A stretch of 64,000 nt of DNA from Ascoidea asiatica JCM 7603 (Eukaryota > Fungi > Ascomycota): the NCBI GenBank assembly GCA_001600695.1, contig BCKQ01000007.1, forward strand, positions 705,712 to 769,711. The letters run 5' to 3'. Below the pieces are notes generated by a model, which did no database searches, was not told the DNA's origin, and worked only from the letters and a program-made list of their open reading frames with translations. Every line of letters starts with the position of its first letter. The stretch's first letter is position 1. Position numbers and translations under genes: made by a program. Positions 40,723 to 64,000 of this stretch are shown here, piece after piece.

Positions 40723-41436
40723 TTATTTTAGCTTCGATTGATTATTTTTATCAACAGAATCTAATTCAGCTAATATAACAGCAGCTCTTTTCAATTGAAC
40801 GAAATTTGTAAATTGCTTGAAAACATATAAAGGTAAAGTTAAATAAACTAAATAAGTAGCCAATTTAATGTTAAAAACTTTTGGTAATTGATCAAAATTT
40901 TGCAAATATAATGCTAAATAAAATAACTCATTAAAAAAACATGTAATGAAAAGTACAGATTTTTTGGTATAATATAAATTCAATAACCAGCTGGATTCTT
41001 TAGATATAGATTTATGTGAGGAACCACCAGATGATAAAGTTGCAAACATATGCATATAATGAGAAGCTAAATCCACAGAAGTTGCAAGTTGAAAGAAAAT
41101 TAAAGCATAATATTTATTGGTTAATGAATTTGAATTACATAAATAACAGATTAAAGTAGAAGTTGTACATCTATCTGTTACCATATCTAAAACAGCACCA
41201 AATCTTGAGGTTTGATTATATTTTCTTGCAGCGGCTCCATCACCAGCATCCAACAAACATGATATTGAATAAATAATCGTACAATATATAGGATGATTTT
41301 CCATTAAAAATAAAGAAATTATTGCAGATAAAACTCTTGAATAACCAATTAAATTTGGAATGTATAAAAAGATATCATTGGAAGTAACTACTGAGGACAG
41401 AGGTGATATACCTTTTGACGAATTTGCTGTTGTCAT
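40723..41436 (-). CDS. PIS1: Phosphatidylinositol synthase
   Basis: IFLYIPNLIGYSRV, CDP-alcohol motif LDAGDGAAARKYNQTSRFGAVLDMVTDR, DLASHYMHM, FNELFY. First ATG at 41436. Confidence 0.96.
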   Translation of the reverse strand: MTTANSSKGISPLSSVVTSNDIFLYIPNLIGYSRVLSAIISLFLMENHPIYCTIIYSISCLLDAGDGAAARKYNQTSRFGAVLDMVTDRCTTSTLICYLCNSNSLTNKYYALIFFQLATSVDLASHYMHMFATLSSGGSSHKSISKESSWLLNLYYTKKSVLFITCFFNELFYLALYLQNFDQLPKVFNIKLATYLVYLTLPLYVFKQFTNFVQLKRAAVILAELDSVDKNNQSKLK

Positions 41437-41730
41437 TGTTCTATAATTGATTGCCGGAATTATCAAACTACTGAAATTTAATCGAAAGATAGGGAAGTCT
41501 CAAAATTAAATCCACAGCTAAAAAACTTGAAGAGTTATATGAAAAGATTTGACGATTTAAAGATTTGAGCATTTAAACATTAAAACATTTAGAAGTTATT
41601 TTGTAGAAGCCAAAACTCCGTCCTTATAAGATAACCGAATTAAGGAAAGAGCTCAATATAATTTAACAAATTTCCGTGGCATTAACAACGAAATCCGGCC
41701 TCTCATATCGGCCTCCCCAAACAAATCAGG

Positions 41731-41959
41731 CCAATTAAACTAGGCTACACAACTCTTTGTGTGGCTACTGAAATTCACCTAACCATGTGATCTTTATAAC
41801 ATGTGACATATGTTACAACATTCCCATGATCTCCTACAACACGCCCGATTTATATTTTAGGTAACTATTTAAGTTGTCAATCTGCAAAGATGAACCTTAG
41901 TCATCTTCTGACCACTCTTATAGTTAGTAAAACAAAATATACTCCTATGTTTTATTAAC
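41731..41959 (+). repeat. 5' LTR of copia element A (~230 bp)
   Basis: Colinear direct repeat of 50243-50472, roughly 70-75% identical by eye, with exact blocks CTTTGTGTGGCTACTGAA and TCTTTATAACATGTGACAT. Ends approximate. Confidence 0.85.
41784..41807 (-). promoter_or_regulatory. Two CDEI-type/Cbf1 motifs (ATCACATG and GTCACATG on the minus strand) in the 5' LTR
   Basis: CATGTGAT at 41784-41791 and CATGTGAC at 41800-41807 match the reverse complement of RTCACRTG. Function unproven. Confidence 0.5.
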
Positions 41960-44900
41960 TATTGAGCCTAATTATTTTAATAAAAAAAATAATTTACTAT
42001 TTGTTTTGTTTACTATTCATAATAAATTAAATGATTTTTGTTTTATATCCAAAGTGTCCTGATTAACAAAACAATTGATAAAGTGAATTTAAATTACCAT
42101 CACCTTAATATGATGCTTATTTAGCATATGGTATAAATATAAACTCGGTATAAGTTTTAATATATCCAACCAGTCTCTGAAAACATTTAAGTCAATAAAC
42201 TCAAATTAACATTCAAGGTACCTAAAATAACTTTTCGGTATATGTTTTTCATCCATTTGAATAATTTATATCCGCTTTTGTTGTTAGTCTTATTTGCCTT
42301 TTTTACCCCTTAAACCTTAAAACTCTCTGCTATGCTGATGCGATTACTGTTTAAAGGATAATAATTCTACAAACATTCTCTGTTGGTGGGTTTTCACCGA
42401 TAGAGACAATTGGGGTATCTAATTTTTTTAAAGACTTAGAAATGGTTTTCCACCACGGTCTCCATTATTTGTTATTTCGGTTTAGAGATCACCAAAAAGT
42501 CAGTTGTTTAAAATTGCTTACCAACAGCGGTTCTCACAGTACGTTTAATCTCATAAACATATGACCTATCAAAAAGTATTCATGTAATTAGAAGCTAATT
42601 TAAAGCTGAGTCAATATGAAAGTAATCGTTTTATTATTGTTGAGCCCTTGTGATTTGGTTCATGGTGAACAATTATGTTTTTGAATATAAATTTTATTTT
42701 AAATTTTAATATTGATTAAATTTTCCAAATTTATCTACAATTATTTTCAATACTACTGATGATTTATGTTGCCCAAACCATTCAATTACTATTTAAAATT
42801 TCAAACTTCAATTAAAAAGTTTGTCAAATCATTACTTATTCTTATTGATAAAAACATTATCAAACATGTATCAATTCAACTAAATGCTATTTCACTAACA
42901 ACCATCTCCAGATACAAAATCAATTGCAGTCTAGAGCATTTTATGTTAAATTATTATTTTTTAAATTGTTCATAACTATTTTTAATTTTAATATCTTATC
43001 GCCATATCTACAACGTTTTGTGGTTCAGTTAAATTCATCTGCCATTTTACTTTTGAAACTATTACTTATTATATTTCCATGTTTCCTACGTTTGAGCTAT
43101 TACTTTGTCCAGTGAATTAAACATCTTATTCAAAAACTCATTTTTAAAAAATGTTTTTCATATGTATTTCTATTCTAATAAGTTTAATTAGATACAATTT
43201 TTTTTTGTTTTGTTCATATAAACATTTCGGAAAGTTCTTTCTTTTCAAATGTTATTAATTTTAAAGGTTGACCCGAATCTTCCTAAATTTACTCCTGAAA
43301 GACTATGATCAAAACGTTTCAAAATGTTGAATTCTCACTCAATTATAATTGATTTAAAACTATTTCCCTAAATCAGAGTTCCAGTAGTATTTTGAACGAA
43401 TTTCCTTAATATAATCTTGTTTAATTTATTCATGTGTTGATATATTTTAGATTTGTTTTACTTTAATTCTGTCTCATTTTCCATTTCAATCAAACTTCTA
43501 TCTAAACTATTGCTTAATCCCGGAAACATGTCTACAGACGTTCCTATTGATGGTAATTTTGATAACAACCTTGTTGGTAAACTAAATGATGATGATGTTA
43601 ATGAATATCTTCTGTTTATTTCAAAATTTGCATAATGAATGCAATTCGTACAAGCTTCTTCACAAAATACTCTCTCTATTTCCATATTTGATCATCGCAT
43701 CAACGTGTTTAGACTTAGTACTGTTGAAAACATTAATCAAACTGAAATTAATCAGAGTGTTTTTTTACAAGCTAAACTTATCGGCAATTATCAAGTATCA
43801 ATAGTTCCTGAAAAGAAAACACTTATTCATATTGAAAAGGACAATAAAACAGAAAGAATTTAATTATTAAGAAATAATAACCCTACTTATCCTTTTTGAG
43901 TAATTATGCTAATGAATTCTTTACCGAACCTTTGATTGAATACCCTATTAAATTATTCACAAATGTTATAACTTTAGATAATGAAAATTCTAACAATGAA
44001 GATAACCAAATAAGAAAATTACGTTTTGAAGTTAGCAAATATTCAGTTAAAAATTGTGAGCACCTTCATAAATTTGTAGATAGAATTTTTTCTCTTCGTG
44101 AATTATTTCAGCTCATCACTGAAGATCAATCTGGTTTTGGTTTTACAAAATGACATTTCCCGTCAAAGTAAAGCTATTATTAAACAATTTTTGAATAATA
44201 ATATTGAATAAAAGCTTGACTTTTCCACTCAACAAATCATTGATATTATCGAGGTATCAAAAGTCAAAGTTCAAGTCTCAATCATGAAACATCAACAGAA
44301 AAAAATTTATTCTGAAGACCTGTTAAATCAATTAGTATCAGTTATTAATTTCAAATTCGGAAACGGAGTTCTCAAAAGTGCTAATCTATTATGGTAGAAA
44401 ATAAAAAACTCTTTATTGAAGTTCCTTCTTCTGACCATCAAGAATTAATCAAAGATCAAAATACTTACATCAAATTAACAAAAACACTTTTCGAATAAAA
44501 TGTCTGGGGTTATTGCTAAACACTTAATAGAAAACTTTATTACAAGTATTAATACAAATAAGTATAACAAATACAAAGATAAATTTATCCCCTTATCAAT
44601 AAATGGTAATGTGAAATTTATTGTTGAATCGAATTTAATTGCAGTTCAATTGCTAAAATCTAGAAATGCAGAAAATGACAAATTAATTATTGAAAACTTA
44701 ATAAGAAAAGAAATTTCACTACCGATATTTTAGATCCCAAGAAAACTGGTTTAGGTCAAAACTTCAGTTCAAAGTCTCTTTATATTAAAATATCCAAAAT
44801 TTCTGCTTCTGATGACACTTCTCATGTTTTGGCTTTCAATAATAAAACAAACTCAATTAATGACATGTCTTCTAACACTGATACTGATGATTAATATATT

Positions 44901-47900
44901 TTACTTATCTCTGATACCAATGCTCCAAAATGTTTTGCCCTTCCCTTAAAAACAATTTATGATGATGAGTTTTTTGAGTCCCTTTTATGAAGCTAAACTT
45001 TGCTGCAACTCTAAAGTTTTCAAACATGATCAATCTCTCTGTCCTATATCCGTTACAGACTTAACTAAGTTCTATCAACTATTAGTTTATTATAAAATGG
45101 CTTCTTATCATTCTTTATTTGTTCAATTATAGGATGAATACTAGTTTTCTATTATGAATATTATCAAAAAGAATAAATGTTCTAAAAAATTTGGAAATTT
45201 TTAGAAAAAGTTTCTTTAATTATAATTCTCAATATGAACGATGGTGGAGTTGAATTTATAGCTTATTATGATAGCAATAACAAATTGATCAATGCTAATT
45301 GTCACTTAAACAATACATGTACTAGGTTCTCGTTCAATGTGTTCAAATCTTATAATTCTTGTTTAAATAATTTCATTGAAACCAATTTCAATTTTATAAG
45401 AATGAGCTCTCTTAAAACAAATTTACAAATCCATCATAAATTGAGTTAGCTTCCTCTCAATACGATAATTAAGCTTATTGATTGTAATGCAATTGATCAC
45501 AAAAATCTTATGATTTCTAACAAGGATTTTAGTTGCGCAATATGTCAATGACATAATATTAATGATAAGATTTCTTCTAAATCAAAATTTGTTGCTACTA
45601 GACATAATCAAAATATTCAAGTTGGTGGCATAGGACCCGTTACTCCTGTTAGCATCACAGGTTATAAATATATTTTTGGTATTGTTGATAAATTTACAAA
45701 GTTTATTTATGCTAAACCTATATTTTATAAACGATAATCAGCTATTTATTTAACGTTTTTCTGAACCACTTACAAACTCTATTTCAGTATAAAGCTACCT
45801 TTCTATTCAGTGATCAAGGTGCAGAGTATGTCAGCAATTTGATTAACCTAAAAGTATTTATGGATGGAACAGATCAAAGATGTATGTTTTGGTTATAGAA
45901 GTATTCAAAATCGTTTAGCACAAAGAGCTATTTCAACTTGGCTCACAATCTGTAGATCTTTATTATTTTCTTCCGGTATTCCTAATAGATTGCGGGAATT
46001 TGCTAGTTTTGATTCAATGGATAGGCATACTAAATCTTTACATAATAATAGTTAAATTAGTCCGCTTGAACTACAATATAATTAACCTTGCATTCAGCAA
46101 ATTTATGTATTCGGCTCCTTTATTTTTACAACTAAAGAGTATATTAGACTTCAAAGCTCAAAAACTTGTAAACACGGTAGGCGAATTTTCCTTTCTGAAC
46201 CTAGATCTCAGCCTGGTCAACTTTATTTAAATCATGATTTTATGAAAATTATGATTGCTGTTGTTATTAATCAAAACAAAAAACAAAGACTACTTAAAGA
46301 TCTTAGTATAATACTAGATATAAATAGAATTCAAATAATTTCATCTGACTCTAAAACAAATTCATTCCATTCTGTATCTGCTTATCAAGAAGATGTTCAA
46401 ACCCCCATTAAAGTTTCCTTTAAAAAATCAGATTACTGCTAAACTGAAAGATACTTTCCAGACTATAAACTTAGAATTTCAAAAAAGGTCTCTGATAATT
46501 TGTGTAATGAATTTTTCGATGTCAATGGGAATTCCTGATTAAACACTATTACTAAAGATTTCCTCAATAACTCTAATATATCTCGTACTAACAATATAAC
46601 TGTTTCTCCGGCCTCTGTACCTAAAACACCATCTAAATTTTCTCCTTAAAATCAAGTTACGTTTAATTTCCCTACATCTATACAACTTGTCAATAGAAAT
46701 AGATTGACTCAAAAGACAATTCCATCTTATGAGTCAATTGAAAACAAAACAACAATTTTTATTTCTGAAACTGTAAAAAATTCAATCGACTCTACTCCTA
46801 AACCAGCATCTTTCTCTGCTACTTCACCCACCCTAAAAAATTATCATGTTAAAGAAAATACAATTAAACATTGCCTTCAATAATTCTAATGGTTGCTTCT
46901 CTAATCCTGATTCACTTCTTCAATACTTGGAAAAAGAAAAATCCGTATCAGAATTGGATAAATTTAATCTTAAACTAACTAATGAAAATTCTTTAACACC
47001 GAATCCAGCTTTTCATCTAATTACATCGTCAGATAAAGTTTCTATTTTTCCTATAAATAACAATTTTCAATACTCAAATTCTGTAAAAGCTTCTCGTCCA
47101 GATGAAAACTTTATTTTAACTCCCTCTAAAAGTTTCTCTAATAAAATTTCTAATTACAATGGTTCCATATGATTTAATCCCCTCTTCTTATATAATAAAA
47201 ATCTTACCGCTGATGTTCTTAATCCAAATTCTTGGCTATAACAATAACTTATTATCTCAAATTTCTAAACTTAATTGAAATAATTTTTTTGTTAATTGTT
47301 TATTAGATTCTAGTTGCACTCCAAATGATCTATGTTCTGTAGTTACTAAAAGCTATAATAATACTGATAAAAGATACTTAAATTATACAATCCCCAAAGC
47401 TATTCCAAATTAGAATGAAGGTTCTTTTATTACACCTGTGCCACTGAGGAAGAATTTCTTCATATATATCGCTCAATTCATCTAGATGAAGCTTTAATAA
47501 ATGGAAAATTTTCTCCTGGCACGAAAACGCTTATTAATAAGCTTTCTCAAACTCCCCTTTCTTTTGGTACATCTTCTTTATATGAAGTTTTAGATCATAA
47601 TGTTGGAGGACATTTTATAACGAATATTAAACAGTTAATCAAGAACCAGTAAATTTCAAAGCAATTCAATATATACCATCTAATTTTCAAAAACTTTGGC
47701 TTGAAGCTTGTTCTCGAGAATTCAATTGTTTCAATTCATTTGAATTTTGCGAATTACTTTCAGAACCTATCAATAAAATTCCAATTTTCACAGGAAGATG
47801 GATACTAAAAATGAAGCATATTTCTGAATTTAGACCAAACCAAGATGGGTGATCCAACGTGATCGTCAAAAACCTGGAAGAGATTTGAAACTTATGCACG

Positions 47901-50242
47901 TCTGTGCCCTAATGAGATTTTTCCCACCTTAATCAAAATATATGCAGAAAAGAAATGGTTCATTGAAACTGGTGATGTTCCTTCTCCATTTCTGAGATGT
48001 TAAATTAAAGAAACACTATATGTCCATGAACATGAAGGCTTATTAACAAACAATTTCCTAATCATATATATTAAATAACTGGTAGTATTTACGGTCTGCA
48101 TCAAGCACCAACAGAATGGTATCTACAAGTTTCGGAACAGTTATAATATAAATTATACACTCAAGATGAAAATGTTTCCTGTATTATTTCAAGATCCTCA
48201 ATTTTTTGTATAAAAATAGATGCTCTGTAAGTTGAAGACATTATTGTTACTGCGTCTTCAATGAAAGCAATGTAAATTAGAAAAAATGATTTTTCAGAAT
48301 TATTTAATATTAAATTATTAGGTCAAATAAAAAATTTCCTTCGCCTTGAGATTGATTGGAACAGAGAAAAAGTATATACATTTATTAATCAAGAAAAATA
48401 TTCACAGAAAATAATAGATACTTTTTTAATCAATACAAATAAAGATAATATCAATGTACGGTACAATGATTCGTTTAAAACTCTAAATATAATTCCTGAA
48501 AAAAATAAAATTTTCAAAGATTGAAAAAATTTCTTATACCCAAATAGGAGGAAGGCTGGTACATTTATCTAGATTTTTCCGACCAGATATAACTCAGTCT
48601 GTTCATATTCTAACTAGACAGAAGGTAAACTATAATTAATTTTATTACAAATGTGCTTTACCTATTCTAAATTATATAAGGAATTCAATTACTTTGGTCC
48701 TTTATTTCCATTAGATCCAATGAAATATAAATCAAGCACTTTCTCTGATGCCTATTACTCTACAGGTGCTCAGTCGGTTAGTGGTACTATTACAATATAT
48801 GGTAAGATACCTTTCTATTGGGGTTTTAAATTTATAGCTTTTCCTCCTTAATATTCCTCAGATTCTGAATTGCAAGCTCGTGCTCACAGCTCTAAGAACA
48901 CGGGATATCTAGCTTGGTTCATTTCAAGACATGATTCCTTCACTTGACCAGACGACACATTCAATAGTTTCAACAGAAAGAGAAATTTTAATTCAAGTTT
49001 CCAATTACCTTTTCTAGATAAACCACCCATTAAAAGTTTTGCCACTATAGTTTTTGTTGATAATAAAAGTGCTGTTTGTTGGACTACATATAGTAGTAAG
49101 CTAAAGGCTAGAGCTCATAATGAACAAAGGTTTTTATTAATTTCTGACAGAATCTATAAAAAATAACAAGAAGTTGAATATGTCAACACTTTAAACAATA
49201 TGGCTGCTATTTTTATTAAATGTCCCCGGATGCAAGCGTCCTTCGTTCAGCTAACTTTCTAGTCTCCAGACCACCAGTTATAATAGCTTAAATTTAATAG
49301 TTATATTGTTGATTTAACTCACTCATAAGGAATTCTGTTCTGGATGTGATACTATGCAGATATTAAAATCAAGTTTCTATTCAACTACTAACCAATCGCA
49401 GCTAATTTTAATTTGGTTTCATCAAGTTCCAAAATCATCTACAAAATCCACTTTAACATTAGTTAAGTTATTCAATTTTATTTTTCTTTTCAGCAAGCCC
49501 AAATCAATAATTGTGTCACAAGCACATGTTACAATTCTTCTGATTGTTTACTTTCATTAGAAGCTAGTTTGCTTCTAGTCGTTTTCCAAAATTAAATCCA
49601 ACATGTTAAATTCTTCCCAATCTAGATTTCATCTGTTTCAAATCTACTTGAATCGAATAATAAATTCTTACCCAATTCTGCAGTATGATTTGCTAATAAC
49701 TCTTTAGGATTAGAACTAAATTATTTACAGTTTATACAATGTATACTTATAAACTTAAATGTTTATTAAAATTCAGTATAAAAGTAGTCTTTATTTAATG
49801 GTCAACTAATTTACTAAATTATAACTGCTACTGACTTTGATTCCATAGTTACTGATCATTTCCAATTTTTTTTTTTCACTATACCTTATCTTTTATTCTT
49901 TTAGATTCTGCGTTTTAATTTCTTTAAGTTCTGGAGGTGCTCTTTCATGTCAAAGATAATTGTTAGTTTAAAATTTATCTTCTTTTATGCTTTGATTTAT
50001 TTTATCTTTTCATTTTCTCCTTTACATTGTTTTACTCTAAATTTCTTATCTTTTGGTAAAGACAAATTTTCTATTGTTTTACTCTTGGCATGATTACTTG
50101 TTACAACAACCCTTACTCTATGATATATACCTAATTAGAATAAGGACGTGAAGTTCATCGAGTAAGGCTTAACTACCTTATTTCTTCAAAAGCTCACTCT
50201 CCTTAACTGTCATCATCCACCAGAAATTCCTGTTTGTGGAGG

Positions 50243-50472
50243 TGAATTAAATTAGGCTCAACAAGCCTTTGTGTGGCTACTGAAGTTTTAGCTAGTCAAG
50301 TAGTCTTTATAACATGTGACATCTGTTAGAGGAGTCACAGGATCCGCTAAAACACTCTCGGTTTATGTTTAGATAACTATTTTAGTGGTCAATCTTCCAA
50401 GATAAAACTTAGTCATATTCTTAGCAGTTTTGTAGTTAGTAAGACAAAATATACTAATACTTTTTAATAAAC
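50243..50472 (+). repeat. 3' LTR of copia element A
   Basis: Starts with TG after a purine-rich GGAGG (PPT-like); homologous to 41731-41959; contains CATGTGAC at 50313-50320. Confidence 0.85.
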
Positions 50473-50499
50473 CAAACTAATTGAATTGCGCTAAACATG

Positions 50500-53400
50500 G
50501 CTTCGTGCGGCTAATGTCACTAAACGCTACATTCATTAATTAAGGTTAAATACGCCACCGTTTGGATATTGCAACTAACCATGACAAACTAAAGGGCAAT
50601 TTGTAAATGGAACAAAAAGGATGTTTCTGGCATCAACGATAAGTCTTTTACCCACTTGATAGATTTTAATTTTGTTTAAAAAACTAAATTGTAGACAGCT
50701 ATGGATACTGATAAAAACCGGAGGTATACTGTCCGTCCTTCTATGCCGTTTATTTATTCCCGTTTTGTCATATAAGGAAGATAGTTTACATATATTAAAA
50801 TTCAATATTATAAATATAGTTAATCCTTCTGGTTCAAAAATATAAAAAAAAAAAAAAAAAAAATTATAGAAAAATAAACTAATTTATTTAAATTTAATTT
50901 TTTAAAATCAGCAAAACAATATCAATTTTGTTTAACAAAGATAGAAAAAACAAAAAACTGATTTCTAAAAGTATATAGAAGAAAAATAAAAATTAAATAA
51001 AAGCATCAAATTAAACAAATATAAAAATCAAGGTTGGTAAAGCTCACTTGAAGTTCCATCTTTATTGTAAAAAGCATAAACAATCTGAGTCTAACGGTCT
51101 TAATTTCTTGTTGAAGTAACGAGGTCTTCTCTTTAACTGGTTAGGGAACTGTTTTAGAATTTGTAATTGATATATAATGAAAGGAATGGGAGAAATTCAT
51201 CTGATGCTCTTTTAAAAAGTTTTTCAATTTTCAGTTTCCAATGGAAACTCAATTCTGAACTTCACTAAATTGTATCGTACCATGATATTGGTGTTATAAT
51301 TTTCCCATCTATTTTGCAATTCTAACATACTGATTTCTGTTCACCAAAAAATTTAATTGCATCGGCTGAGAGATTATTAATTTGGGGAATTGGAACTGGT
51401 CTTCTATATGGCCTTTGATTATCTTTGATTCGCTATTTTGGTTTCAATCAGTACAACATCTTCTAAACGCTTATCTGCGATTGGTTGTTCTAACACCAAT
51501 ATATAATGTAATGTAACTGGTGCTTGTTTGCCAGTAGGTTCGGAAGTAAAAAAAGTATTGATTTTGTAATTATGTTCAAATTAAAGGGGCAAATAAAAAT
51601 AAAAGTTAGAAGGAAATAATTAAATCGCCTTTAGAAAAAACAGGCAATTTAAATACCATTCCAACTGGCATGATAAAAAATGAGGTAACGTTAAACGGAT
51701 CTCATTTTAGACAGCTTGCCTTAAGTACATAAAGACAATGTAAATATTATTTGTTCACCACAAATATCGAACTTTCATGGATGTGTAAGAATCCTAAAAA
51801 ACTATTATAATAAACCGTCAATGCCAATGTCACCTAATTAGATAAAAAGCGACAATTCAAATGAAAAATATTTTTATTGTTACATTAATATGTGGATGTA
51901 ATTGGGTGAGATTCATATTGAGCGTGTCTTGCTCAAGTAAAAGATTTTTCTTTTTCCTGAGGGTGAGATCACGTTGAACTAAAACAATACTTTGTTTTAG
52001 GAGTCTCACTTGAAAACAGTTTGTAGTTACTTTTTCACTAGTGAAGACGTTTCAAACTACTCACTAAAGCTCTTCGAAGCAAGAGGTTTCAGAAAACATT
52101 GTTTTTCTGGAAATATACCGAATTGGTAGAGTAGGTAGCTATCAAAAACTCTGTATCGACGGGTTATTCGCGAAGTATCCTCTAGGAGGCTTATAGCACG
52201 GGTTGCTTTGTGCACCGTCTGCTACCGAGTTTTGAGGGTTGCACAGAAAAACATAAAACACCCCATTCCCCTCTATTGGAAATTGCTTGGAATAGGAAGG
52301 AAAGTATTATTCATTTTTTAAGTGATAAAATTCATTGGATTACCCATACTGGTCATGTCAGCATGCGGATACATATCCGTCCTTATGCCAAAAAAAAAAA
52401 CTTTTCAAAAAAGCACTATCAAATGACTTCCGACGCATGTGTCTGACTTTAGTCCCGAAAGCTGTAATTGAATGCAGTTCAGTCGAAAAAAAAAATTTAT
52501 CAGTAAAAGGTATGTAATTCAAATCTCCGCAATTGCGAATTAAAAGATAAAATATATAAAAGGAAAATAAACATTTATGAGAGGTCACTACCCTAATTAT
52601 ATCGGTGGCAAAAATGAGGGTAACCCATATTAACAATAAATTTGTAAAATTAGCATCCAAAAGTTCACTGCCACACTTCGGAAAAGCAGTACAATAACGT
52701 TCTGATCTAAAACAGAGTAAGTCATTCTGCAAACAAACAAGAAGATTAGAGTACATTCTGCACGTAGACGGAATATCGCAAAAAAATAACAGATGCGGGC
52801 AGCGCGCCGTTAGGTGCACTCCAGATTTTGGAACCGAATTCTAAGAACGCGATAGAACATAGGGTAAATAATCTAAGTATCAATGAAGATTTTACAAATA
52901 GACGAGACTTTGTCTGTACACTTATAATCGTATAATAAGATGATTGACAATCAAATAGACCCACGATTATAACTCGAAGGGTCTTGAAAATTTAGGTAAT
53001 CTTGATATATCGCCATTTAAAGGATTTTCATAATGATAGAAAGAACAAATTATATTGGAGGGTTCGTGTTCTGGAAAATGCTTTCTGGTATTTACAATCT
53101 TTAAATTGATTTTGGAATGATTCTCTCTGTTTTTGTTTAGCGGTTCAATTTGTGAGACTCTAGATTTAGTCTTTGCTGGATCCTTGGGAGCTGTTGGTTG
53201 TCTTGCAAGGCTAGGATTTAAGTGCTTGAACCCGTCCACAGGCCGAACGCTACAAACTAAGGTCAGAATTCATATTTAGACTATCTGGACCTATATTAAA
53301 TAAATACGGCGATCAAAACGAGGTCCAATTCCGAGGAAAGATGGAAATAAAATTCAATTTGTTAGATTAAACCATTAAAATTTGCACATATACCATTAGT

Positions 53401-56400
53401 CTGTGCGTGATATGCAGTGGTTGTGTGATATTTGATTCCTAAAGAGGCTAATTTTTCAATAACATTCTTCGGAACAAAACGAGAAGCATTATTGATACTC
53501 ATTTTTTTAATTCGGCCCAGGTTAGTGACTAAAGTTTGAGCTAAATCTAAAAAATGTAAGGAACCATTATCTTGTGTTGCAACGGCATACTTTTAGTATG
53601 TACGATAAGCAATTGCAATAATACAAAGTTTATTACCAGATGATGTGTGTTGAAAAAGACCAAAAAGGGTACCCCATCTTGTAAAAGCTGTTACAGAAAG
53701 AACTGTATTCGTGTTTTAGAGATACCTGAGCCGTCTTTATCGTATGACAATGAGGAGAAACTCTAATAAAACCTTAAAATAATTGACTACTATCGAGATG
53801 TAAGTATTTTCGTTCACAATCTTTTCTAAATTTCCAATGCAACAATGAGCATTTCAAAGATGAACTTTTTCAGTGACTTCCTTAAAGACTTCTTCACTGA
53901 AAACAGTAGCTAAGTGATCTTTAATTCTAATAAGAAGTTGAATATCCTGAAAAATAACGTTAGCAACGATAAATTTAGAATTCCCATATTTTAGGAATTT
54001 CTTTACGTTGAAAAAAACTTTTTAATTAATAAGATCAACTTCAGACAAACCCTCAATTGGTTTGATGCGTTTGATTTGACTATCAGTTTCAACAACTTGC
54101 TGAGTTTCCAGTAATGTCCGATTTGCTTTTTCATCTGCCAAATTAGCGCTTCTTGATAAGAAATCAGGAATAACATGTTGTTTTCTAGGGTTATATTGAA
54201 TATCAATTTCATTATATTCAATGATTTCAATAAATTTTGTAATTCTTCTTGCTGGATTAGATTTAGTTCTAAAATATTAAAAAGATTCATTATCAGTTCT
54301 TATAATAATTTTGCATCCTTGAATGTCTGTTTTACAAATGAATCAATGAATGAACAACCGACAAATATTCTCTCTCTTGAGCAGAATACTTTTGTTGTGC
54401 TTTGGAAAATTTTCTTGATTCAAAAGCAATACAATACAATCGATATTTTCGACTGTTCTCATTTGCATATGGTTAGAGTAACACGCAGCGAAAGCCAAGT
54501 CAGAAGTATCGGGTTCTAAAATGACAACTCTTTCAGGATCAAATGGCTTTAAAATAGGAGCAGTAGTTACTGTATTTTCATTGATGGGAAGCATTCAGTC
54601 AGAGAAGGATTCAATTCAGTTTTTATTCTTTGTTTAGGATAGTATACCAATAAATCAGTAAAGGGGGGGGCATCTGTTGAGAGAAATACTGGGTAAATTT
54701 TCTATCATATGAACATAGATTAGGAAAGCCTCTTATATCAGTAATTGAATCTGTTAAAGGCTAATTTCAGATTTTCTTAATTTTTGTACGAACGGTTTAG
54801 CTTCCTTCTGAAGAAAGAATATCTCCTAAGAATTTGAGTTCCTTTCAAAAGAATTTAGACTTCTTGACATTTAATTGAAGTGTTTCTTTTTCAAGTTGAC
54901 TAAGGATCTCATTCATTTGAATGATATGATCAGCGTTTTTATGGCGGTAAACTTTATCATGTAGATAAACAATAACTTAAGTTAAATGGCCTAAAAGTTT
55001 CATGATAAATCATTGAGAGGTATAAGTGCCATTGAATAAGCCAAAAGGCAGTACATTGAATTGATAATGCCTGATTGGAAGAAATCGCTGGTTTGAGTTT
55101 ACTATCATTATTTAAAGAAATTTGCTAGAGGACAATATTTCATATCTAAGCAAGTGAAGTATTTAGCCCATTGAGTGTGTTTAACCAAATATTAATAGCA
55201 GCCAAATTAAAATAATATCTAACATTAATAGCATTTACTTTCCTATAATGAACACAAAGTCAATAAGTTCTATCATCTTTTGGAACAAGAACTAAAGGAA
55301 AGTTCCAACTACTTTTAGTTTTATAAATTAATTCAGCTTCTAAGTTTGATTAAACAAGTTCATCAATGAATTTTTGTGGAAGAGGACTATAGTGGTAACT
55401 TCCAATATAGAATGGTGTTTCTGATGTTGTTTCAATAGTGAGCTTGAACAGTATTTCTTAAGGTAACCTTGGAGCTGAAATTTAATCATTGAAGTACGGA
55501 ATTTTCCTAAGGTCAACCTCTTGTTCCTTATCCGGTATCGATGCTGAAAAATAAAATCTTCCTAGTTCATCAATGTTCACCCGATTCAAACTACAGTTTT
55601 CAGAATCATTAGAAAACATAAGGGAAAGTTTATCATAATTTTTTGCTCAAAACGTATGGTCGTAGAAAAATCTACTGTCAATAGGAGTATGGAAAGCTTT
55701 TATTGAACTTCCTGTCAAACAGAACACTTAATGTCAGGTAAAGCAAAGTTTGCAATAAATAATCGTAAAAAGACATCATTCTTGACTATCATTGCCCCTG
55801 TAAAGCCACGAACTGTTGGAGGGTTGCGCTCTAGCCATTTTGTTTCCAATCCTTTTAAAGATGATTCAAAAGATAGGTAAATTCAGCAGCAGTTCCAAAA
55901 AGAATTGTCATCGTTTTATCATTAATAGTAGAATTTAAGTTTCTATTAGAAAAGTTTGTGTTATTGGAGTTAATTGATCTAAAATGCTCATCTTCAAGAA
56001 AGGATTCCGAGGTGACTTCCTGCTCTGATTTTTCAAATGGGTGTTTTGTACTCCTTCTACCGCAATTCTGTAACTAGATTTTTTGTCATATCTCTTTTTG
56101 TATCTATAATTGGGATAGACTTTTGATTTTCTATTTGCGGCTTCAGTTTCAGCAATTGTTGGCTATTTTATACGCCAGATACAACTATTTCTGAAATGTG
56201 CTGGGAGATTAGAGAAATAACAAGGATTGTTTGGGGAACGAATTGCATTGAAGTTTTCCTTTCAATTCGCAAGATTAGTTGTTTCAAGATCAATGAACTC
56301 ATAGATCTCATTGTCAATAATAACTTCATTTGAAAGAGCTGTAAAAACATCTCTTGACATGAACAAGTTTAGTAGTTTGTGGAACAGTTCAATAGTTGTT

Positions 56401-57600
56401 TTGGATGGAAATTTCGTTTCCAACCGAATTTGATGAGGAAATTCATTTCTAATTTCAGAAATGATTGTTAGTATCATGTAAGCACTAGAAACAATATTTA
56501 AAAGAAGACCTTCATAACAAATTTTAGATCGTGTAATATAATCAAGAACTTTTTCTTTTTCAGAGGGTTTAATTTCTTTGAGTTGTTCAATGAAAGTCCT
56601 ATAATTTTGAAATGGGCCTATTGGTCGGAGAAGGACGGCAGAGGCTGCAGGACAAGAAGTACTTCTTAAACGATTTCTTGCAATACTTCTAATAAAATTA
56701 AACCATTCTAAATTCATACATTCTGGAATATAGGTTCAGGATTTCCAAGTACAGCCAGGTGACCGGTATACTCTACTGGCACAGGCCTGGCGCTATCAAT
56801 TTGGCCGACAGCAATAGTAGTGCAAGCCTTGGTGATAAAACCCTTGTACCTGTGATGCCTACCGGAAAAGGAAGGAATACCCCTGGGGATACAGAGTCGG
56901 CGATAGTAATATGTCCAAACCTTACAATGGATGTTAGTAATCACATTTTACGGGTTTACACGTTTGTATGTTAAACAAGTATTGGGAGCGGGGGCTTACG
57001 GGTTAACAGTGATTATGGATTGTCTGCTTCCATTTTAGTACATAGAGCATGGAGATGCTTGAACTATTCTCCAGCTACAATGTTCCATGACATTGGATAG
57101 ATATACTCGCCGGCTACCAATTATCTAACAAGTTCCCTAATCATCAAGACCGTAACTTGATTGTCATACACACGAGTGATTCAGATATACGGAGATCCCG
57201 GAGGGCTGGTTTCACGTTCCAATTTGTAATTATACAAAGGAATTATTAGTTCATATTTCTCTATGACGGATTAATATGTGGTTATCAACGACGTGAAGTC
57301 CTGTAATGGTTAACAGTTTTTGTCTAACAAGATGCTGTCTTTGGCTTGATTAGGGGAGATTGATTACTGAGTACGTACAAGAAGCTGATCATTAGTCCGA
57401 CACCTAAATCTACAAAATGGAACAAAAAGTCGTCCTAGGTTCTATCAAACTGAAATTGTACTTGCACCTTATATCAGATTTTATGTGGACAATACTGACT
57501 TGTGGACTGAGATTAAGAGATGTAATTTCAACGTGAAATATAAGAGGTAGGGACTGATATGTTCCTTGGGGTTGGGGTCCCTAATAGTAACCGTACTGCT
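50500..57600 (-). mobile_element. Degenerate Ty3/gypsy LTR retrotransposon (element B); outer boundaries approximate
   Basis: Gypsy domain order on the minus strand: gag-like ORF 56262-56717, zinc-knuckle remnant NCGRR ~56055, PR remnant ~55890. RT: FPLVLVPKDDRTY*LCVHYRKVN ~55230-55303, NVLPFGLFNG ~55030-55060, VIVYLHDK ~54955-54976. RNase H PFDPERVVILEPDTSD ~54500-54550. IN: TAYHAQTNG 53393-53419 and LPKFSRPFEL (GPF-like) ~52970-53000. PBS-like TGGTAGC at 57119-57113. Confidence 0.85.
51540..52965 (+). mobile_element. Nested, opposite-strand fragment of a second gypsy-type integrase region
   Basis: Interrupts element B between its GPF-like motif and the following APVT motif. The plus strand shows CTVC 52211-52222, PIPLYW, SLDY..TG ~52332, GY.SVL..FSK..H ~52367-52420 and a frameshifted HxQTN at 52723-52738. 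Confidence 0.55.
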
Positions 57601-57980
57601 ATACGTATGGAAAATACCCAGCACGAAATACGGGAGATATTTATTGCTGTTCAAGGTCCAAATTAATATAAATGGACCATAATTACTTTATTTTTATATA
57701 ATTTTTTATATATAGGTTATGGAGATAATTGAATAGTAGTAGTAATAATAATATTTAAATTATAGATATGAAGATTTATATCCAATAAATCATACCTTAA
57801 CCTATACATTTTAAAGAAGTCTCAATAGATTGTAATTTTAAAATTAAGTTTCTATCATCTCTACCGTCAACAATTAAGTTTTCTTTTAATTTTGGTGGTT
57901 TGAATTACTATCCATGCCAATACCAGAGGCTCCCATAGTTCTTGTTGTCTGATACACTATTGAGACTCATTATGCTCAAA

Positions 57981-57988
57981 CATGTGAC
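57981..57988 (-). promoter_or_regulatory. CDEI-type/Cbf1 motif GTCACATG in a GC-rich patch between retroelements
   Basis: CATGTGAC in the same AACATGTGAC context as in the element A LTRs. Confidence 0.4.
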
Positions 57989-59051
57989 CCGGATGACTTT
58001 CAGTCGTTTCCGAGGACACTCGCACAGATGCGGATCCAGCTCAGGGTTGCCACAGAGAAAATCTTTATTGTCTCAGTCAAAAATAAAATAATGTCAATTG
58101 TTCTTCTCATTTATATTTTATATAGAGTTGAATTCATGTTTTTTTTCTTCAGCCATATAAGGTTATTAGCCTACTGCTGCTCCAAAAAATGTAAATCAGA
58201 TTATCGTTAATTTAAATAGTATTAGAAATTAGCCTGTTTACTGTGTTTTATTTGTACATATTTTTGCAAATTTTGTAGTTAAAATTTAAAAAATATTGGG
58301 GACATCAATAGTGATCTTGGGTAAAACTTACTTTACCTGTATGAGGTGTTTATCGTTACAATTATTATTGTAGATTTTATTGCAATTTTAAAATGGTTCA
58401 AAAAGTTTAAGTATTTGGATATTTGTCTTTTAAAATTCTTCGATTTCATTTGAAATTACCTTTTATTTAGTACAAAATCCAAAGGCTAATCCATTCATAG
58501 TACTTTTGAAATTCAATCCAATTAATAACTGTTATACTACTAAACGTATTTTAATTCAATTTATATTTTCTAAATTAAAACATAATGCAATTCAAAATTT
58601 TAATCATCTTGGTGATCAATTCAATATCAATTGAAGTTGTTGATGTAAAAATAAGACTCCTACAAATGTTAATCATATTGGTGTTCAACTAAAAATCGGT
58701 TTCAAATTATTAAACTAAAGATTACTCATCTACAAATGGTAATGGTAGCTGAGTTAAATGAAAAGACAACTAAAAATCTTTAAAAACAAACAATTCATCA
58801 ATTGTTTATTAATTTCTTATTTAATTACTTTGGTTTTTCTTTAATACAATAAATTAAGTTAAAAACTAATTCTACCTTCAATTAGTTATCATTTCTTTTA
58901 TTAGTCACTTTTAAAATTGGCAAAACTACAAATTTTATTAGACCCACAGGACTGGTAATTAATCTCTAGTGTATGAGCACCTTGGTTTTAATGTTTACAA
59001 TAGTCACGGTCTATTCACCATCCACTGCTGGAAAGCCGCACAGTGGCAAAT

Positions 59052-62000
59052 TGTTACTATATGGTTTTAATAATTGAAATAGTGTTATATGACATTCTAT
59101 ATAAGAAGGTGATATCAGAGATTTCTTTAAAGAGATTTTTCTAAGTGTGGGTTGCCGAGTTTCAAAAGTATAGAAACTTAGTATGGTTAGGTTCCTATCT
59201 ATTTCACTGGTCAAATAGAACTTTATGTGTGTAATTACTAATCACATTCCCTCACATATACCAGTGTGTCGTGTTTATTATTTGTCTACTAAGTGATCAA
59301 TTTTGTGTTATTCAGGATTAGAACTAACAATTTTGTCATGATTTTAATTCCAAAATAAAACAAACAAAACGTATAATGGTTTGATTTATTATCTATCATC
59401 ACATTTTGCAAAATAAAACAAAGCTGGTAATAACGGTGTTCACAACCCATAATTTCAGCTAGTTGTTGTATGACACTTTTTCATTGTTAAGAACCATTTT
59501 GCTCGACTTTTAAAAATATTAAAATATTTTCCAAATCCAACTAAACTTAATCTAACCGGCCCGTTCAGTAATAATTTATTCACAATTCCGTGTTAATTGA
59601 TCTACCTAATTTTATTGTGTCACATAAAATTTTCAAAAACTGTTAATTCAATTTATCTTTCCAAATCTTAAGGAATTATCTTTGATATACTTATTTAGAA
59701 ATCTTTCTTAATTATCTTCCTACTTTACTTTTAATGTTCAAATAGTTATTTTTCATGCCTGGTCAATATTATCCTATTGAATCTTTTTATGATTAATTTG
59801 CGAATGCAAATGCTTCTTCAACTTCTGTGCTCCAACTGTTATCAATTATAATCAAACTCGTTTAGATCCTATCAATTTTATTCAAACTAGATTGATTGTG
59901 TGATGATACTTGTGATTTTCAACTTAAAGATTCTAATTCTGATATCAATGTTATTACCCAAATATTACTCAGTGTCTTAGTACAATTCAAATGATTTAGT
60001 ATGTGTTTATAATACAATTGTTCTAAATCATTTTTCGTTAGACTCTGATCAAACTTATTGGGTTACAAGTGATTTCTCTCGATCTTATTGAAAGGTTTAT
60101 TATGATACTGTTTCAAGTATTGTTTCTGGATGGTTAACTATTAGGGTCCTCAAAAATATATATATTCCAGAAGACATTCAAAGTTCTCCTAAAAGCGTTT
60201 TCAATTATGTTTCAACTCTTCAATCGTATGGTACCACTATTCAAAAAGCGATTGGTAGAATGAATGCTACAACTGAATATGCAAGTTATGCTTTAAGAGA
60301 TATTTTCTTGAACTTCCAGATAAAGAAGATGAGTTCCCACAATTTTTCAATCCTGAACTAAATGCTTTGAGATCCCTTTATACAATTCCTAGACTTAATT
60401 ATGAACTTTAAAAATATCCTCAACTTGCTATATCTTTACTAAAACCTTTTCTCCAACATTTTCATTCTGAGAAGAATATTAGTTTTTCAGAAGTAAGTGA
60501 AATTATTGTCAAAGATAAATTAACTCATGTAATTTATCCGGAAAAACATTTAGCAAATACTTTTCAATTGGGTCGTAAATATGGTTATTTTGATGATACT
60601 GTTAAAGGTAATGATACTCCTTTTTCTAAAGATGAATCTTCTGTTGGTAAGAAATTTAAAGGTAACTCTAATAAGAAATCTTATTGCAAAAACTACAAAG
60701 TACATCATCTATGGGGTGCACATATTGCTCGTAATGATGATACTCCTGGTAAAGATGCTTCCTCTTCTGGGGTGTGTTTTTAATAATTATCTTCCGTTGC
60801 TGTCGTAGAGTCAGGTGCTTCTCATACAATTATAACTACAGATTTAGAACAACATTTTTTCAATTTCAGACCTTCAAACCTATTACTTATGCTCACTTTT
60901 GGAACTCAAACTACTACTACTGCTGTTGGTCATATTTCAATTAAAATAAAAGATACTGATACTGTTTATACTATATCTGCTGTTGTTGTTCCTTCAATTG
61001 ATATAAATTTTATTTCTGTTAAACGATTGTGTAAGATCTATAACATCGCTGTTTCCTTTGATTGCTATGACGTTTTTATAAAAGATAAACTTAATGTTCG
61101 TCCAGTTGGTACATTTTCTTTAGATAAAATCGTTGTCACACAACTTCTATTTTTATACCAACTGATCATCCTCCAGGTATAATATCACCCAGGTATAATA
61201 TCACCCATTTATAATGTTACTACTACTAATGCTACTTAATTACGAGAAGAACATTTAATAAATGGACATCCATCTGTTTCCATTATAAGAAATATGGGAT
61301 ATAAAATAACTATTCACAATGAAAGAGACATAAAACAATGTGATAATTCAACTAGAACCAAGATGAAACACTCATTTCAAACAAGTAATGTTGGAAATTC
61401 CTCGAGAAGGTTACTCCAAACTGCTCATATGTACACTATTGCTCCTTATACGTTAACTAATAAAACTAAACAGTGGTATGTAACCATGATGGATGATTAC
61501 TCTGGATACGTATCTACCTTTAAGGTAGTCAATAAAGGACATATTGCAAAGACAGTTACAGATACAAATATTTTCTGGGAGAGACTTACTGGACTTAAAC
61601 TTGGTGTTATCAAGAAACACAAGGGATGCCAATTCAATAAACTTGACGTAGGATATAAGCTTCCTCATGCTGCTTATAGTCCATATTTTAATGCACGAAT
61701 TGAACGAGGTCAAAAGATTAAAAGAATCGTTGATTCATTACTACATACTGTTGCAGATAATATAAACGTATTAGAATACAAGACCTTATACTTATGGGTA
61801 TGCTAGTTAAGACCTCGTTGGTATCATTCATCAACAAAACAGTCTCCACTTGAATTATTTGTAGGTAGAAAACCTCTTTACGTAATAAAACACCTAGAGT
61901 CATGGAAGATACTTAGATATGTTATAAAACGGGAAAGGTTCTTGCCTGTTTTATAGGTTTCCCTAACATTTCAGCTACATATAAGTTCTTATTACGTATT

Positions 62001-63730
62001 TATCCTATCAATGAAGTCATGACATTTGATCTAAACAGATCTTATACTCATTATACGTTAAATATAAAGAAGTCCCAGTTACAACTACAGATAATTAATA
62101 AACAGCTTTATATCCAACTTTTATTACAACGCTTAATCAGCCTTCTCATATATTCAATCCAACTTTCCTTTTAAGTGATTCAACTCAAATAGATCCTACT
62201 GATGTTATTGATCCAAAGAAATATAAAGATCCTATCAAGAATCCTAATTATCGACTGGCCATTGATATAGAAGTTCAAGAATTTATGAATCAAAATGTCT
62301 TTGAAGAAGTTGAATGTAAAATTATTAAAAGAATTCCAACGTCTCATACTCATAAATTTGTACGGATGTTTACACAAAAATATGATACTTTTAAAAATGC
62401 TACTAGACATAGGGCAAGGCTGGTGGAATTAGGCAATAGAGAAGGTCAATTATCTACTTCAACTGATTCTTATGTTAGGCATAAAAGCTCCTTTAGGTTT
62501 TACTTAAATTTCTCTCGAATTAAATCTTCAAGTATTTGGTGTGGATATCAGTGCAGCTTTTCTGATTGCTAATCCAGGAACATCAATATACTGCGGGACT
62601 CCTGAGGGGAAGGAACATATAATTAACTCAAATGTCTTATCTTTAACAAGGCCGCTTATGGATTTAAGGATTGTTCCTTAAATTTTTATCTTCATCTTCG
62701 ACAACTCCTATCAACCATAACAATTGAAGATAACATACTAACTGAAAGTCAATCCAACTATAATATATACTATATTACTATCAATTATAAATCTAAGCTA
62801 ATTCTAGCTTTTGATGATGAAGATTTCAGCTTAGTCGGTACCTCCTTTTACTGTAACTACTTCATTGCGCAACTTAAAAAGGTTTACCAGGTAAAACATA
62901 CTTTTCAACTTGATTAAATTCTTGGCTGTCATCTTTCATATAAATCAGGATCCATCTCTATATCACAGACAGATTACATTACTACAACCCTACAAGAACA
63001 AGCCTGGGAATCAATCCCAACTGCTAAATCTGTATGTCATCTTACTCCTCCGACAGAATGGGCACCCTTAAGCTTACATACTATTCCTGTTTTAGATATT
63101 GAGATTCAAAGACTTTTAGGTCAGCTATTGTGGCTAGCTACCCAAACTAGAGCAGATGTTCTTTTTATGTCAGTTTAATATTCAGTTCTCCTTATACCAA
63201 ATTGATATTAGCCCAAATCAAGCAAATCTGCCGTTATCTTGAATACACAAAAGATTATGGAATCCGTGTTACTAAAAGCTCAAGAAGTATCATATCATAT
63301 TGTGATACAGGCTTGAATAATAATACTCAGCTTGGCTTTATTAAAACAATGGCTAATAATAATATTCAATGGAGTAGTTCTAAATGCAAAGTACCTGATA
63401 CCTCAACATATATTGCTGAACTTTATGCTGCTACATCATTCATTGAGTCTACATTATGTTCCAAAGGTCTCAAAGAAGTACTGCAACTTTACTCTCAGAT
63501 AATCTAGCTCTTGCTTCCGTTATTAAAGGTCATAATAATATTAAAAGTATGAGGCACTTCAAAAAGAGAATCAATAAACATAGAAAATTATATCAAACTA
63601 AATAATTTGAAATTAGTCATGTTCCTGGAATTTTAAATCCAGCGGATGTTTGAACAAAAGCTCTTCCTGGATCAAAATTGCTTTCACTATTGGAAGTAGA
63701 TAGTTTTCAGAGTACTATTATCTGTTATTA
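59052..63730 (+). mobile_element. Degenerate Ty1/copia retrotransposon (element D); 3' LTR not identified within the window
   Basis: PR VESGASHT ~60805. IN: HLINGHPS ~61252, LQTAHMYTIAP, MMDDYSGY, FNARIER (ORF 61294-61806). RT: HRARLVELGN ~62408, DISAAFL ~62544, KAAYGFK ~62648, AFDDED ~62807. RNase H: YCDTG ~63298, NPADV*TKAL ~63636. Candidate 5' LTR ends CA at 59314, followed by GGATTAGAA. Start approximate. Confidence 0.85.
61173..61204. repeat. Exact 16-bp tandem duplication (CCAGGTATAATATCAC)x2 disrupting copia D pol
   Basis: Directly visible. Confidence 0.85.
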
Positions 63731-64000
63731 ATTTGTTTTTTATTTTCTTTTTTATTTTTATTTTTGTTTACGTTATGTTCAATTTTGTTATCTACAATAT
63801 TTAATCTTTTTTTTTACTTAACATTTTGCATTAAAATTTGTCAAATAGTTTATCAAACTTTTCGAATAATGGTTAAGACGTGTTTATTATTTATTGTTAC
63901 AGATTGTACTAACTTTTATATATCAATTATTTGGTGCTATTTATGTTTTATTTTATTTTATTTTGTTTACTATTATTCCTTGGGGCTCTCACCTATTTTC

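Follow-up and report, generated by a model that had tools for sequence, protein, structure and literature searches.

Where do the genes of the budding yeast Ascoidea asiatica JCM 7603 give way to decayed retrotransposons, and does that change mark a centromere? Retrotransposon-cluster centromeres are a published class in budding yeasts (PMC13017519, PMC12711049, PMC5106798): in many orders the centromeres coincide with clusters of Ty5-like/copia elements, each chromosome having a single cluster (PMC12711049, PMC13017519), with Cyberlindnera sargentensis, Scheffersomyces stipitis, Debaryomyces hansenii, and Saccharomycodes ludwigii as examples (PMC12711049, PMC13017519). An initial annotation of a 64,000-nt stretch of contig C7 (hereafter, the window) proposed a locus of this kind in its right-hand part. 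Here, we compared the window and its continuation (L001-L010) with the remainder of the assembly, which comprises 71 pieces and 20.3 Mb; clusters outside C7 were mapped by match coordinates. Three sequencing runs were found for the organism, all of them DNA.

The gene-to-transposon boundary

The initial annotation had described a collapse of gene density next to PIS1, and this was borne out: host genes end with the PIS1-like gene (Table 1), and none occurs from 41.7 kb on. In the first 41.5 kb of the window, 14 ORFs reach 180 aa or more; their products include a Mob1/phocein protein, a gamma-tubulin complex protein, and the PIS1-like CDP-alcohol phosphatidyltransferase. Between 41.7 kb and the right end of C7 (C7:867818) no host ORFs were found, the long ORFs all being transposon-derived. 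The gene-free length, previously put at over 22 kb, was therefore understated; from 41.7 kb on, the window holds the gene-facing margin of a transposon graveyard that is at least 120 kb long and extends through L001-L010 to the end of the contig. Recognizable repeats and transposons cover 3% of positions 1-41.7 kb vs. 63% of 41.7-64 kb, and 46% of the whole desert, the latter being a lower bound because the reference set is small. A tRNA search over the entire desert found none, and no Rfam families were found in it up to extended coordinate 144 kb. Of 40 short desert ORF pieces scanned against Pfam, only a few could be named: Pol_BBD, RVT_2, zf-CCHC, MULE, and, weakly, Ulp1. Approximately half of the desert is without class assignment after these scans. 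Its G+C content (0.29-0.36) is higher than that of genic DNA, with no GC-poor trough. The genome of this budding yeast is very AT-rich.

Table 1. Features of the window and of the adjoining desert.
Feature	Position	Strand	Basis
PIS1-like CDP-alcohol phosphatidyltransferase, last host gene before desert	40723..41466	-	Pfam CDP-OH_P_transf, E=4.5e-17
Inner 22 kb of the desert (at least 120 kb)	41700..64000	.	ORF listing and repeat comparisons
copia A, whole element	41731-50474	+	LTR pair and similarity to copy E
copia A 5' LTR (family 1)	41731..41958	+	Direct repeat of 50245-50470; followed by degraded primer-site-like motif
copia A interior: gag-like, protease, integrase, RT, and RNase H remnants	41959..50244	+	tblastn to copy E, 43525-49253
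copia A 3' LTR	50245..50470	+	Direct repeat of 5' LTR
LTR-like repeat, probably gypsy B 3' LTR	52469..52758	.	71-75% identity to C6 telomere-adjacent sequence and C26 start
gypsy B pol remnant (protease, RT, RNase H, integrase)	53069..56111	-	tblastn to dispersed gypsy copies L051-L056
Unclassified repeat between gypsy B and copia D	56736..57751	.	71% identity to extended coordinates 100641-101656; 75-84% to C3 start
copia D	57981..64000, on to ~64322 beyond the window	+	LTR pair, Pol_BBD, RVT_2
copia D 5' LTR	57981-58156	+	Primer-site-like motif GGTTATTAGCC 4-5 nt after LTR
MULE DNA transposon	L008:605-3926		PF10551, E=8e-22, between terminal inverted repeats

Decayed elements in and beyond the window

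Within the window, the desert contains three old elements, copia A, gypsy B, and copia D, which are neighbors and un-nested. The earlier element list held for these three, all of them old and decayed, but not for a nested gypsy (integrase) fragment placed at 51.5-53 kb, since 50.4-53.1 kb yielded no match, even with a threshold of E=5. Nesting, which had been claimed for the window, was instead seen beyond it, where copia E lies within repeat X and a MULE within another copy of X.

The two LTRs of copia A are 77.8% identical (K2P 0.26), and its 5' LTR shares 85% identity with the LTR of copy E. Its interior, which contains many stops, frameshifts, a deletion of ~1.9 kb, and an RVT_2 match with four stops (48048-48440), is 75-79% identical to the better-kept copy E, with 79% DNA identity across 4 kb. 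On the plus strand of copy E the domains run Pol_BBD, rve, RVT_2, i.e., the copia order with an RVT_2-type RT. Gypsy B DNA is 78-80% identical to the dispersed, more intact gypsy copies L051-L056, retains RVT_1 (54824-55093) and RT_RNaseH_2 (54335-54576) domains, and is collinear with the reference copy L052, on which the Ty3/gypsy order of RVT_1-type RT, RNase H, and integrase was seen. The stretches next to the C6 telomere and at the C26 start that match its probable 3' LTR also match extended coordinates 65691-66140. Copia D is bounded by a 178-bp direct repeat (75% identity, spacing 6.17 kb) and encodes a Pol_BBD domain within 60787-61179 and a weak RVT_2 match with four stops (62366-62998; E=2.3e-6); two copies on C4 match it at 82-83% identity, and of these one lies immediately behind telomere repeats.

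The desert was thus built by several LTR retrotransposon families and at least one DNA transposon, a MULE whose 670-bp terminal inverted repeats are 98.7% identical, and these are partly nested. The old copies decayed in place. Their retention, as originally suggested, was supported by LTR pairs that are 75-78% identical and by full-length family 1 copies that occur in clusters only. RIP-like decay was rejected because transitions were not in excess (393 vs. 442 transversions) and the G+C content of the desert exceeds that of the genes.

Primer site, LTR ends, and possible affinity to Ty5

The primer-site motif of family 1, GGTTATTGAGCC, adjoins the LTR, is exact in five copies, and consists of GGTTATGAGCC, the complement expected from the anticodon-arm core of the universal initiator tRNA, with one T added. 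There are eight occurrences of GGCTCATAACC in the genome, and the sites are candidate initiator-tRNA genes only. In copia D, the primer-site-like motif has one substitution relative to the expected sequence. An initiator-tRNA-type primer site has been called diagnostic of the Ty5 family (PMC12711049), and copia A/E and D, with their near-match to such a site, are plausible candidate members of the Ty5 lineage. They differ from Ty5 elements in that the primer site is one base off the expected sequence and the LTRs end in AAT...ATT: the LTR of copy E, the boundaries of which were set by an empty site in the second copy of repeat X, starts with AATTAAATT and ends with CTTATT, and the TGTTG...CAACA termini of Ty5-lineage LTRs are absent from it. 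A CDEI-like motif in the LTR (RTCACRTG) was discounted, as ~15 chance occurrences are expected per 120 kb (a rough estimate) and the motif is mutated in both copia A LTRs.

Distribution of clusters in the genome

Clusters of decayed elements were found on C1 (1936-1978 kb), at the start of C3 (~0-96 kb), on C4 (1484-1520 kb), and on C7, with further clusters on C8, C10, C11, C12, C14, C15, C16, and C19; their positions are non-telomeric contig ends or contig interiors. The six largest contigs (11.2 Mb) hold four clusters, or ~1 per 2.8 Mb, from which ~7 would be expected in 20.3 Mb. The telomere repeat, a 17-nt unit, marks 14 ends (C1, C2, C3, C4, C5, C6, C9, C14, C15, C17, C24, C47, C53, and one piece inside scaffold C4), which implies at least seven chromosomes. 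In five telomere-bearing contigs (C1, C3, C4, C14, and C15) the order is telomere, gene-rich arm, cluster. Mapping for one cluster per chromosome, as the initial annotation had advised, therefore gave agreement in number, but the left end of C1 carries another, weaker cluster and elements are scattered over C15 and C18, so a rule of one cluster per chromosome is not established.

Element copies common to clusters of different contigs are 88-93% identical. Internal sequence of family 1 (A, E) is restricted to the clusters of C7 (twice), C19, C11, C14, C27, and C8, with the exception of one 540-bp internal fragment at C3:502 kb, and the young family F (copies 90-97% identical) occurs on cluster pieces only; full copies of both copia families are confined to clusters. 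LTRs of family 1 additionally occur at a small number of arm positions (C13:76 kb, C2:2264 kb, and C12:36 kb), in some cases without a nearby internal family 1 match.

A possible centromere and how it might form

We lean toward the reading that the desert marks the centromere or pericentromere of C7's chromosome, i.e., a regional centromere of the Ty5-cluster type. Support comes from the long intergenic tract, free of genes and full of Ty5-like elements and LTRs, and, as judged from its sequence, the locus is most likely a further example of that established class, the class itself not being new. The centromere proposal of the initial annotation stands insofar as the locus fits the published class and the mapped genome-wide pattern is compatible with about one cluster per chromosome away from assembled telomeres; it is weakened by the same families also capping telomeres, by the second cluster on C1, by the family 1 LTRs on arms, and by a G+C content above that of genic DNA. 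No known centromere-linked gene was recognized in the flank, and neither the main texts of PMC12711049 and PMC13017519 nor the supplementary files consulted for PMC12711049 mention PIS1, APC1, MOB2, or SPC98. An exact-match protein search with one of the flanking genes gave no hit.

Presumably, copia families whose primer site is of the Ty5 half-tRNA type prefer one special chromatin domain per chromosome, which would be the kinetochore region or adjoining silent chromatin, with chromosome ends targeted as well. Insertions into this domain would hit no genes, and LTR-LTR recombination would be rare there, a condition under which we infer that dead copies stay full-length and do not collapse to solo LTRs. 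A short part of the cluster would carry the kinetochore itself. A more far-reaching version, in which regional centromeres of at least 100 kb, among the largest of budding yeasts, are multi-family and the same Ty5-like families reside at centromeres and telomeres, is doubtful; if true, it would suggest one shared chromatin mark at both places.

Alternative explanations

The desert could also be an extended subtelomeric transposon domain leading to a chromosome end, in which elements gather because Ty5-like integrases are drawn to silent chromatin at telomeres, as happens in Saccharomyces, where Ty5 targets Sir4-bound telomeric chromatin (PMC13017519). We regard this as possible, but clearly less probable than a centromere. 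The desert is open-ended: the right end of C7 falls inside a young multi-copy element, copies of the same young elements (90-98% identical) lie at the ends of C3, C16, C23, and C13 and ~1 kb from the end of C19, and the C7 end is an assembly break within a repeat, with no telomere. The telomere check proposed earlier thus had a divided outcome, for while the C7 end is not telomeric, about 17 kb of the desert is duplicated on C47 (21.6 kb), which is a 97-98% identical, reverse-oriented copy of extended coordinates 142387-159292 and is capped by a telomere. The desert may therefore lie near a chromosome end, through a terminal inverted duplication with the C47 arm, although C7 and C47 break in the same young repeat, as simple paralogy would likewise predict. 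Other telomeres also adjoin desert sequence: that of C24 caps a truncated family 1 element, those of C5, C6, and C3 are flanked by matches to desert repeats, and in the piece inside scaffold C4 the telomere repeats directly abut a copia-D-like copy, with three decayed copia matches in the next 31 kb. (These C4 repeats were rejected as a genuine internal, "interstitial" sequence, since they directly follow a scaffold N gap.) Against a subtelomeric domain, none of the 11 telomere-bearing contigs >150 kb has an RT/integrase match within ~35 kb of its telomere, so ordinary subtelomeres are short here; moreover, the 14 telomeric ends are already assigned, cluster-bearing contig ends are similar in number, and on C3, C4, C14, and C15 the clusters lie opposite the telomeres.

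An interstitial transposon island with no kinetochore role, in gene-poor, recombination-poor, or silenced DNA where insertions are tolerated, would be expected several times per chromosome. The two clusters on C1, the scattered elements on C15 and C18, the family 1 LTRs on chromosome arms, and the mixed content of copia, gypsy, MULE, and unclassified repeats are all compatible with such islands, which we nevertheless consider unlikely: the six largest contigs contain only one bridged internal cluster in 11.2 Mb, and the confinement of two families, one of them young, to clusters points to targeting rather than passive tolerance. In addition, the choice of special chromatin is narrow, because all budding-yeast orders except Lipomycetales are reported to be without canonical (H3K9-methyl) heterochromatin (PMC13017519). 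Finally, unrelated repeat contigs could have been chained during assembly, given its 71 pieces and the doubtful join in scaffold C4, where an N gap precedes telomere repeats. Such an artefact is very improbable, as the junction between PIS1 and the copia A LTR is spanned independently by a contig from a separate 2023 run (X2) with even depth on both sides, read depth around it is at the single-copy level, diverged old copies (75-80% identical) are unlikely to collapse, and the desert parts read or translated contain no long N run, only a few isolated N near the contig end.

Comparison with known systems

The C7 desert resembles Ty5-cluster centromeres in being a big gene-free region of mostly dead copia-type elements and LTRs, in a putative primer site of the initiator-tRNA half-molecule type, in the sharing of copies between clusters on different contigs, and in an estimated cluster number close to the apparent chromosome number. 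It differs in its length of at least 120 kb, compared with the few-kb intergenic regions quoted for Wickerhamomyces, in its additional gypsy, MULE, and unclassified repeats, in the presence of the same families at telomeres, and in being known from sequence alone. In Saccharomycopsis fibuligera, each chromosome has a single island made up of degenerate, repeated LTR elements of the Ty1/copia type, and these islands are putative centromeres (PMC5106798). The likeness lies in the island of degenerate Ty1/copia LTR elements; however, the telomere unit is 11 nt in S. fibuligera vs. 17 nt here, and that case is backed by complete chromosomes and an RNA-seq trough, whereas ours comes from a fragmented assembly and DNA only.

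Ty5 of Saccharomyces is found at telomeres and silent mating loci through integrase-Sir4 targeting. The elements described here are likewise copia-type, have a putative half-tRNA primer site, and can lie directly beside telomere repeats (C24 and the C4 piece), but most copies belong to large clusters in internal positions. Cryptococcus and filamentous fungi have transposon-rich regional centromeres that depend on H3K9 methylation, DNA methylation, RNAi, or RIP. These too consist of nested dead retrotransposons over tens to hundreds of gene-free kilobases; unlike them, the desert has no RIP-like signature and its host is a budding yeast, of a lineage that is presumed to be without H3K9-methyl heterochromatin, like other budding yeasts outside Lipomycetales.

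If confirmed, the locus would be an unusually large Ty5-cluster centromere made from multiple families, in a class that recent work reportedly places at the root of point-centromere evolution, and the marking of both centromeres and telomeres by the same elements would bear on what their integrases recognize. The clusters indicate where centromeres are to be sought in a chromosome-level assembly, and the desert repeats explain the positions at which the present one breaks.

Extent and composition of the desert

The gene-free, transposon-filled region seen in the initial annotation was confirmed, but the 22 kb assigned to it proved too small. With the remainder of contig C7 to the right of the window (L001-L010) taken in, so that extended coordinates (the window followed by L001-L010) run to 162.1 kb, where the contig stops, all ORFs of ≥180 aa from 41.7 kb onward were transposon-derived. 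Since no tRNA was found across this whole stretch and no Rfam family up to extended 144 kb, the desert is at least 120 kb long. Demonstrable repeats and transposons make up 3% of the gene-bearing sequence and 63% of 41.7-64 kb; across the entire desert they account for 46%, which is a lower bound. G+C was 0.29-0.36 in the desert (window 41700-64000 plus L001-L010) versus 0.16-0.31 in genic DNA, the reverse of what is reported for some yeast centromeres, which are GC-poor troughs. A contig from a separate 2023 sequencing run (X2) spans PIS1, the first LTR and the inside of the first element, with even depth on both sides.

The window (C7:705712-769711) belongs to a genome of 20.3 Mb in 71 contigs or scaffolds; G+C is ~25%, and the yeast-like genes lack introns and have many Asn runs. 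Fourteen ORFs of ≥180 aa lie within the left 41.5 kb of the window, bearing out the ~3 kb per gene estimated earlier; among the ORFs there is one of 2000 aa, which the initial annotation took to be APC1.

Features of the window, the rest of C7 and the genome-wide transposon clusters
Feature	Location	Details
Mob1/phocein protein	left 41.5 kb of window	ORF
Gamma-tubulin complex protein	left 41.5 kb of window	ORF
PIS1-like phosphatidyltransferase	40723-41466	ORF
Copia A	41731-50474	LTRs 77.8% identical, K2P 0.26
Gypsy B pol remnant	53069-56111	minus strand
Copia D	~57981-64322	178-bp LTR pair 75% identical; Pol_BBD domain; RVT_2 match weak
Copia E	extended 69900-79882	LTRs 93.3% identical
Repeat X	L001:2173-5899 with L002:5881-8129; L007:8930 to L008:9591	low-copy, unclassified
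MULE DNA transposon	L008:605-3926 (C7:840316-843637)	670-bp inverted ends 98.7% identical; inside second X copy
Young copia family F	L010:4065-8107 (C7:863776-867818)	454-bp LTR, zinc knuckle, Pol_BBD domain
Clusters of stop-bearing matches, by coordinates	C1:1936-1978 kb; C14:289-358 kb; C15:336-386 kb	
Clusters of stop-bearing matches, left ends	C1, C3, C8, C10, C16, C19	
Clusters of stop-bearing matches, right ends	C4, C7, C11, C12	

Elements of the desert

The interior of copia A is 79% identical to copia E, a better-kept copy beyond the window (together, family 1), and gypsy B is 78-80% identical to more intact gypsy copies dispersed elsewhere in the genome. A nested gypsy fragment, also proposed from the sequence, was looked for at 50.4-53.1 kb and not found. 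Substitutions between element copies showed no transition bias, so a RIP-like process was rejected. Copia E (L001, L002) has an unusual length of 9.98 kb; upstream of its protease, open frames of 430, 114 and 386 aa extend over ~3 kb, and the 430-aa frame, the piece of the three that was scanned, matched no Pfam family. Copia E sits within repeat X, its two flanks being contiguous in the second X copy. Repeat X has ~5 copies, C13, C34 and C38 included, and its sole Pfam hint was a weak Ulp1-protease match (E=0.0035); no integrase could be established in it. In the MULE, one stop divides the transposase frame into open stretches of 311 and 254 aa, and no second copy was among the matches listed in the genome search. 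The family F copy is interrupted by the 370-bp LTR of another young family, which also flanks intact dispersed copias (e.g., C6:901-910 kb). A ~1-kb repeat was also seen at L008:8583-9596, L001:4470-5506 and L003:9799 to L004:833; it has >30 copies of 70-73% identity on many contigs, in both arms and clusters, and may be an LTR or a non-autonomous element.

The LTR of copia E ends in CTTATT, directly followed by GGTTATTGAGCC, the complement of the universal initiator-tRNA anticodon-arm core, GGTTATGAGCC, plus one additional T. This motif is exact in five copies, every one in a cluster region, and in copia D GGTTATTAGCC lies 4-5 nt past the LTR. A primer site of the initiator-tRNA-core type has been called diagnostic of the Ty5 family (Hession et al., PMC12711049), for which TGTTG...CAACA has been named as termini (Haase et al., PMC13017519). 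Such termini are absent here, the LTR ends being AAT...ATT; we therefore describe family 1 and copia D as Ty5-like in their priming, without assigning them to Ty5. The copia E LTR (L001:5900-6123) also contains GTCACATG, a match to the CDEI/Cbf1 pattern RTCACRTG. The two LTRs of E keep it intact, whereas in the two LTRs of A it is mutated; it is likely a chance occurrence.

Genome-wide clusters, telomeres and the centromere reading

Whole-genome Pfam searches (RVT_2, RVT_1, rve and RT_RNaseH_2; 55-78 matches each) were placed along the contigs. Stop-bearing matches formed clusters (see table); RT/integrase-type matches with an open frame were mostly single and scattered along the arms. Four clusters fall on the six largest contigs (11.2 Mb), a density of ~1 per 2.8 Mb that would give about seven across the genome. 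The telomere repeat is a 17-nt unit, CATCCAACATCAACTGT read from left ends (e.g., C9:1-85 and C6:1153095-1153196); its presence at 14 of the contig ends examined (L011-L081) indicates at least seven chromosomes. The internal sequence of family 1 and the young family F, whose copies are 90-97% identical, were found only in clusters or cluster pieces, which favours targeted integration over simple survival; family-1 LTRs are present at a few arm sites too. The right end of C7 falls inside F and the LTR of the other young family. Since C3, C13, C16 and C23 end within copies of the same young elements, and C19 has one ~1 kb from its start, this end is an assembly break. The left end likewise breaks in repeated sequence, as at least the first 23 bases of C7 (L017) recur in reverse complement at the very start of C21 (L031); the sequence looks coding.

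Centromeres made of retrotransposon clusters are an established feature of many budding-yeast orders, and it has been argued that point centromeres descend from them (PMC13017519). In C. sargentensis, dead Ty5-like elements form a single cluster on every chromosome, located at its Hi-C peaks (PMC12711049), and each S. fibuligera chromosome has one degenerate copia island (PMC5106798). The C7 desert fits this class, although it differs in size and mixed element content and its families also associate with telomeres. The centromere or pericentromere proposed in the initial annotation is our best reading, held as somewhat more likely than not, and it is complicated by telomere-capped family copies and by the two clusters on C1. 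The latter would suit an island that is not centromeric, which we consider improbable.

An extended subtelomeric domain, which we regard as rather unlikely, would accommodate the telomere-linked copies. A truncated family-1 element is capped by the C24 telomere, and repeats of the desert match sequences adjoining the telomeres of C3, C5 and C6. In scaffold C4 (L062, C4:1519084-1522117, at about position 1490), an N run is followed by about three telomere units and directly by a copia-D-like copy, with three decayed copia matches in the remaining 31 kb; probably, a piece from a chromosome end was joined to the scaffold in error. Comparison of L082 (C47:18480-21636) and C47:1-5223 with L008-L010 showed that C47 (21.6 kb) carries a reverse-oriented, 97-98% identical copy of extended 142387-159292 (~17 kb of the desert), capped by telomere repeats where it matches extended 142387; an additional ~4.7 kb lies in between. 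C47 could represent a paralogous end of a chromosome, or else a terminal inverted duplication of which it forms the far arm. On telomere-bearing contigs >150 kb, no RT/integrase match lay within ~35 kb of the telomere, and the order on each of C1, C3, C4, C14 and C15 is telomere, gene-rich arm, cluster, as a centromeric position would have it.

Outside the window and distant from all transposon clusters, an RVT_1 match at C7:265612-265905 lies within an open 936-aa frame, which may encode the catalytic subunit of telomerase or a different host reverse transcriptase.
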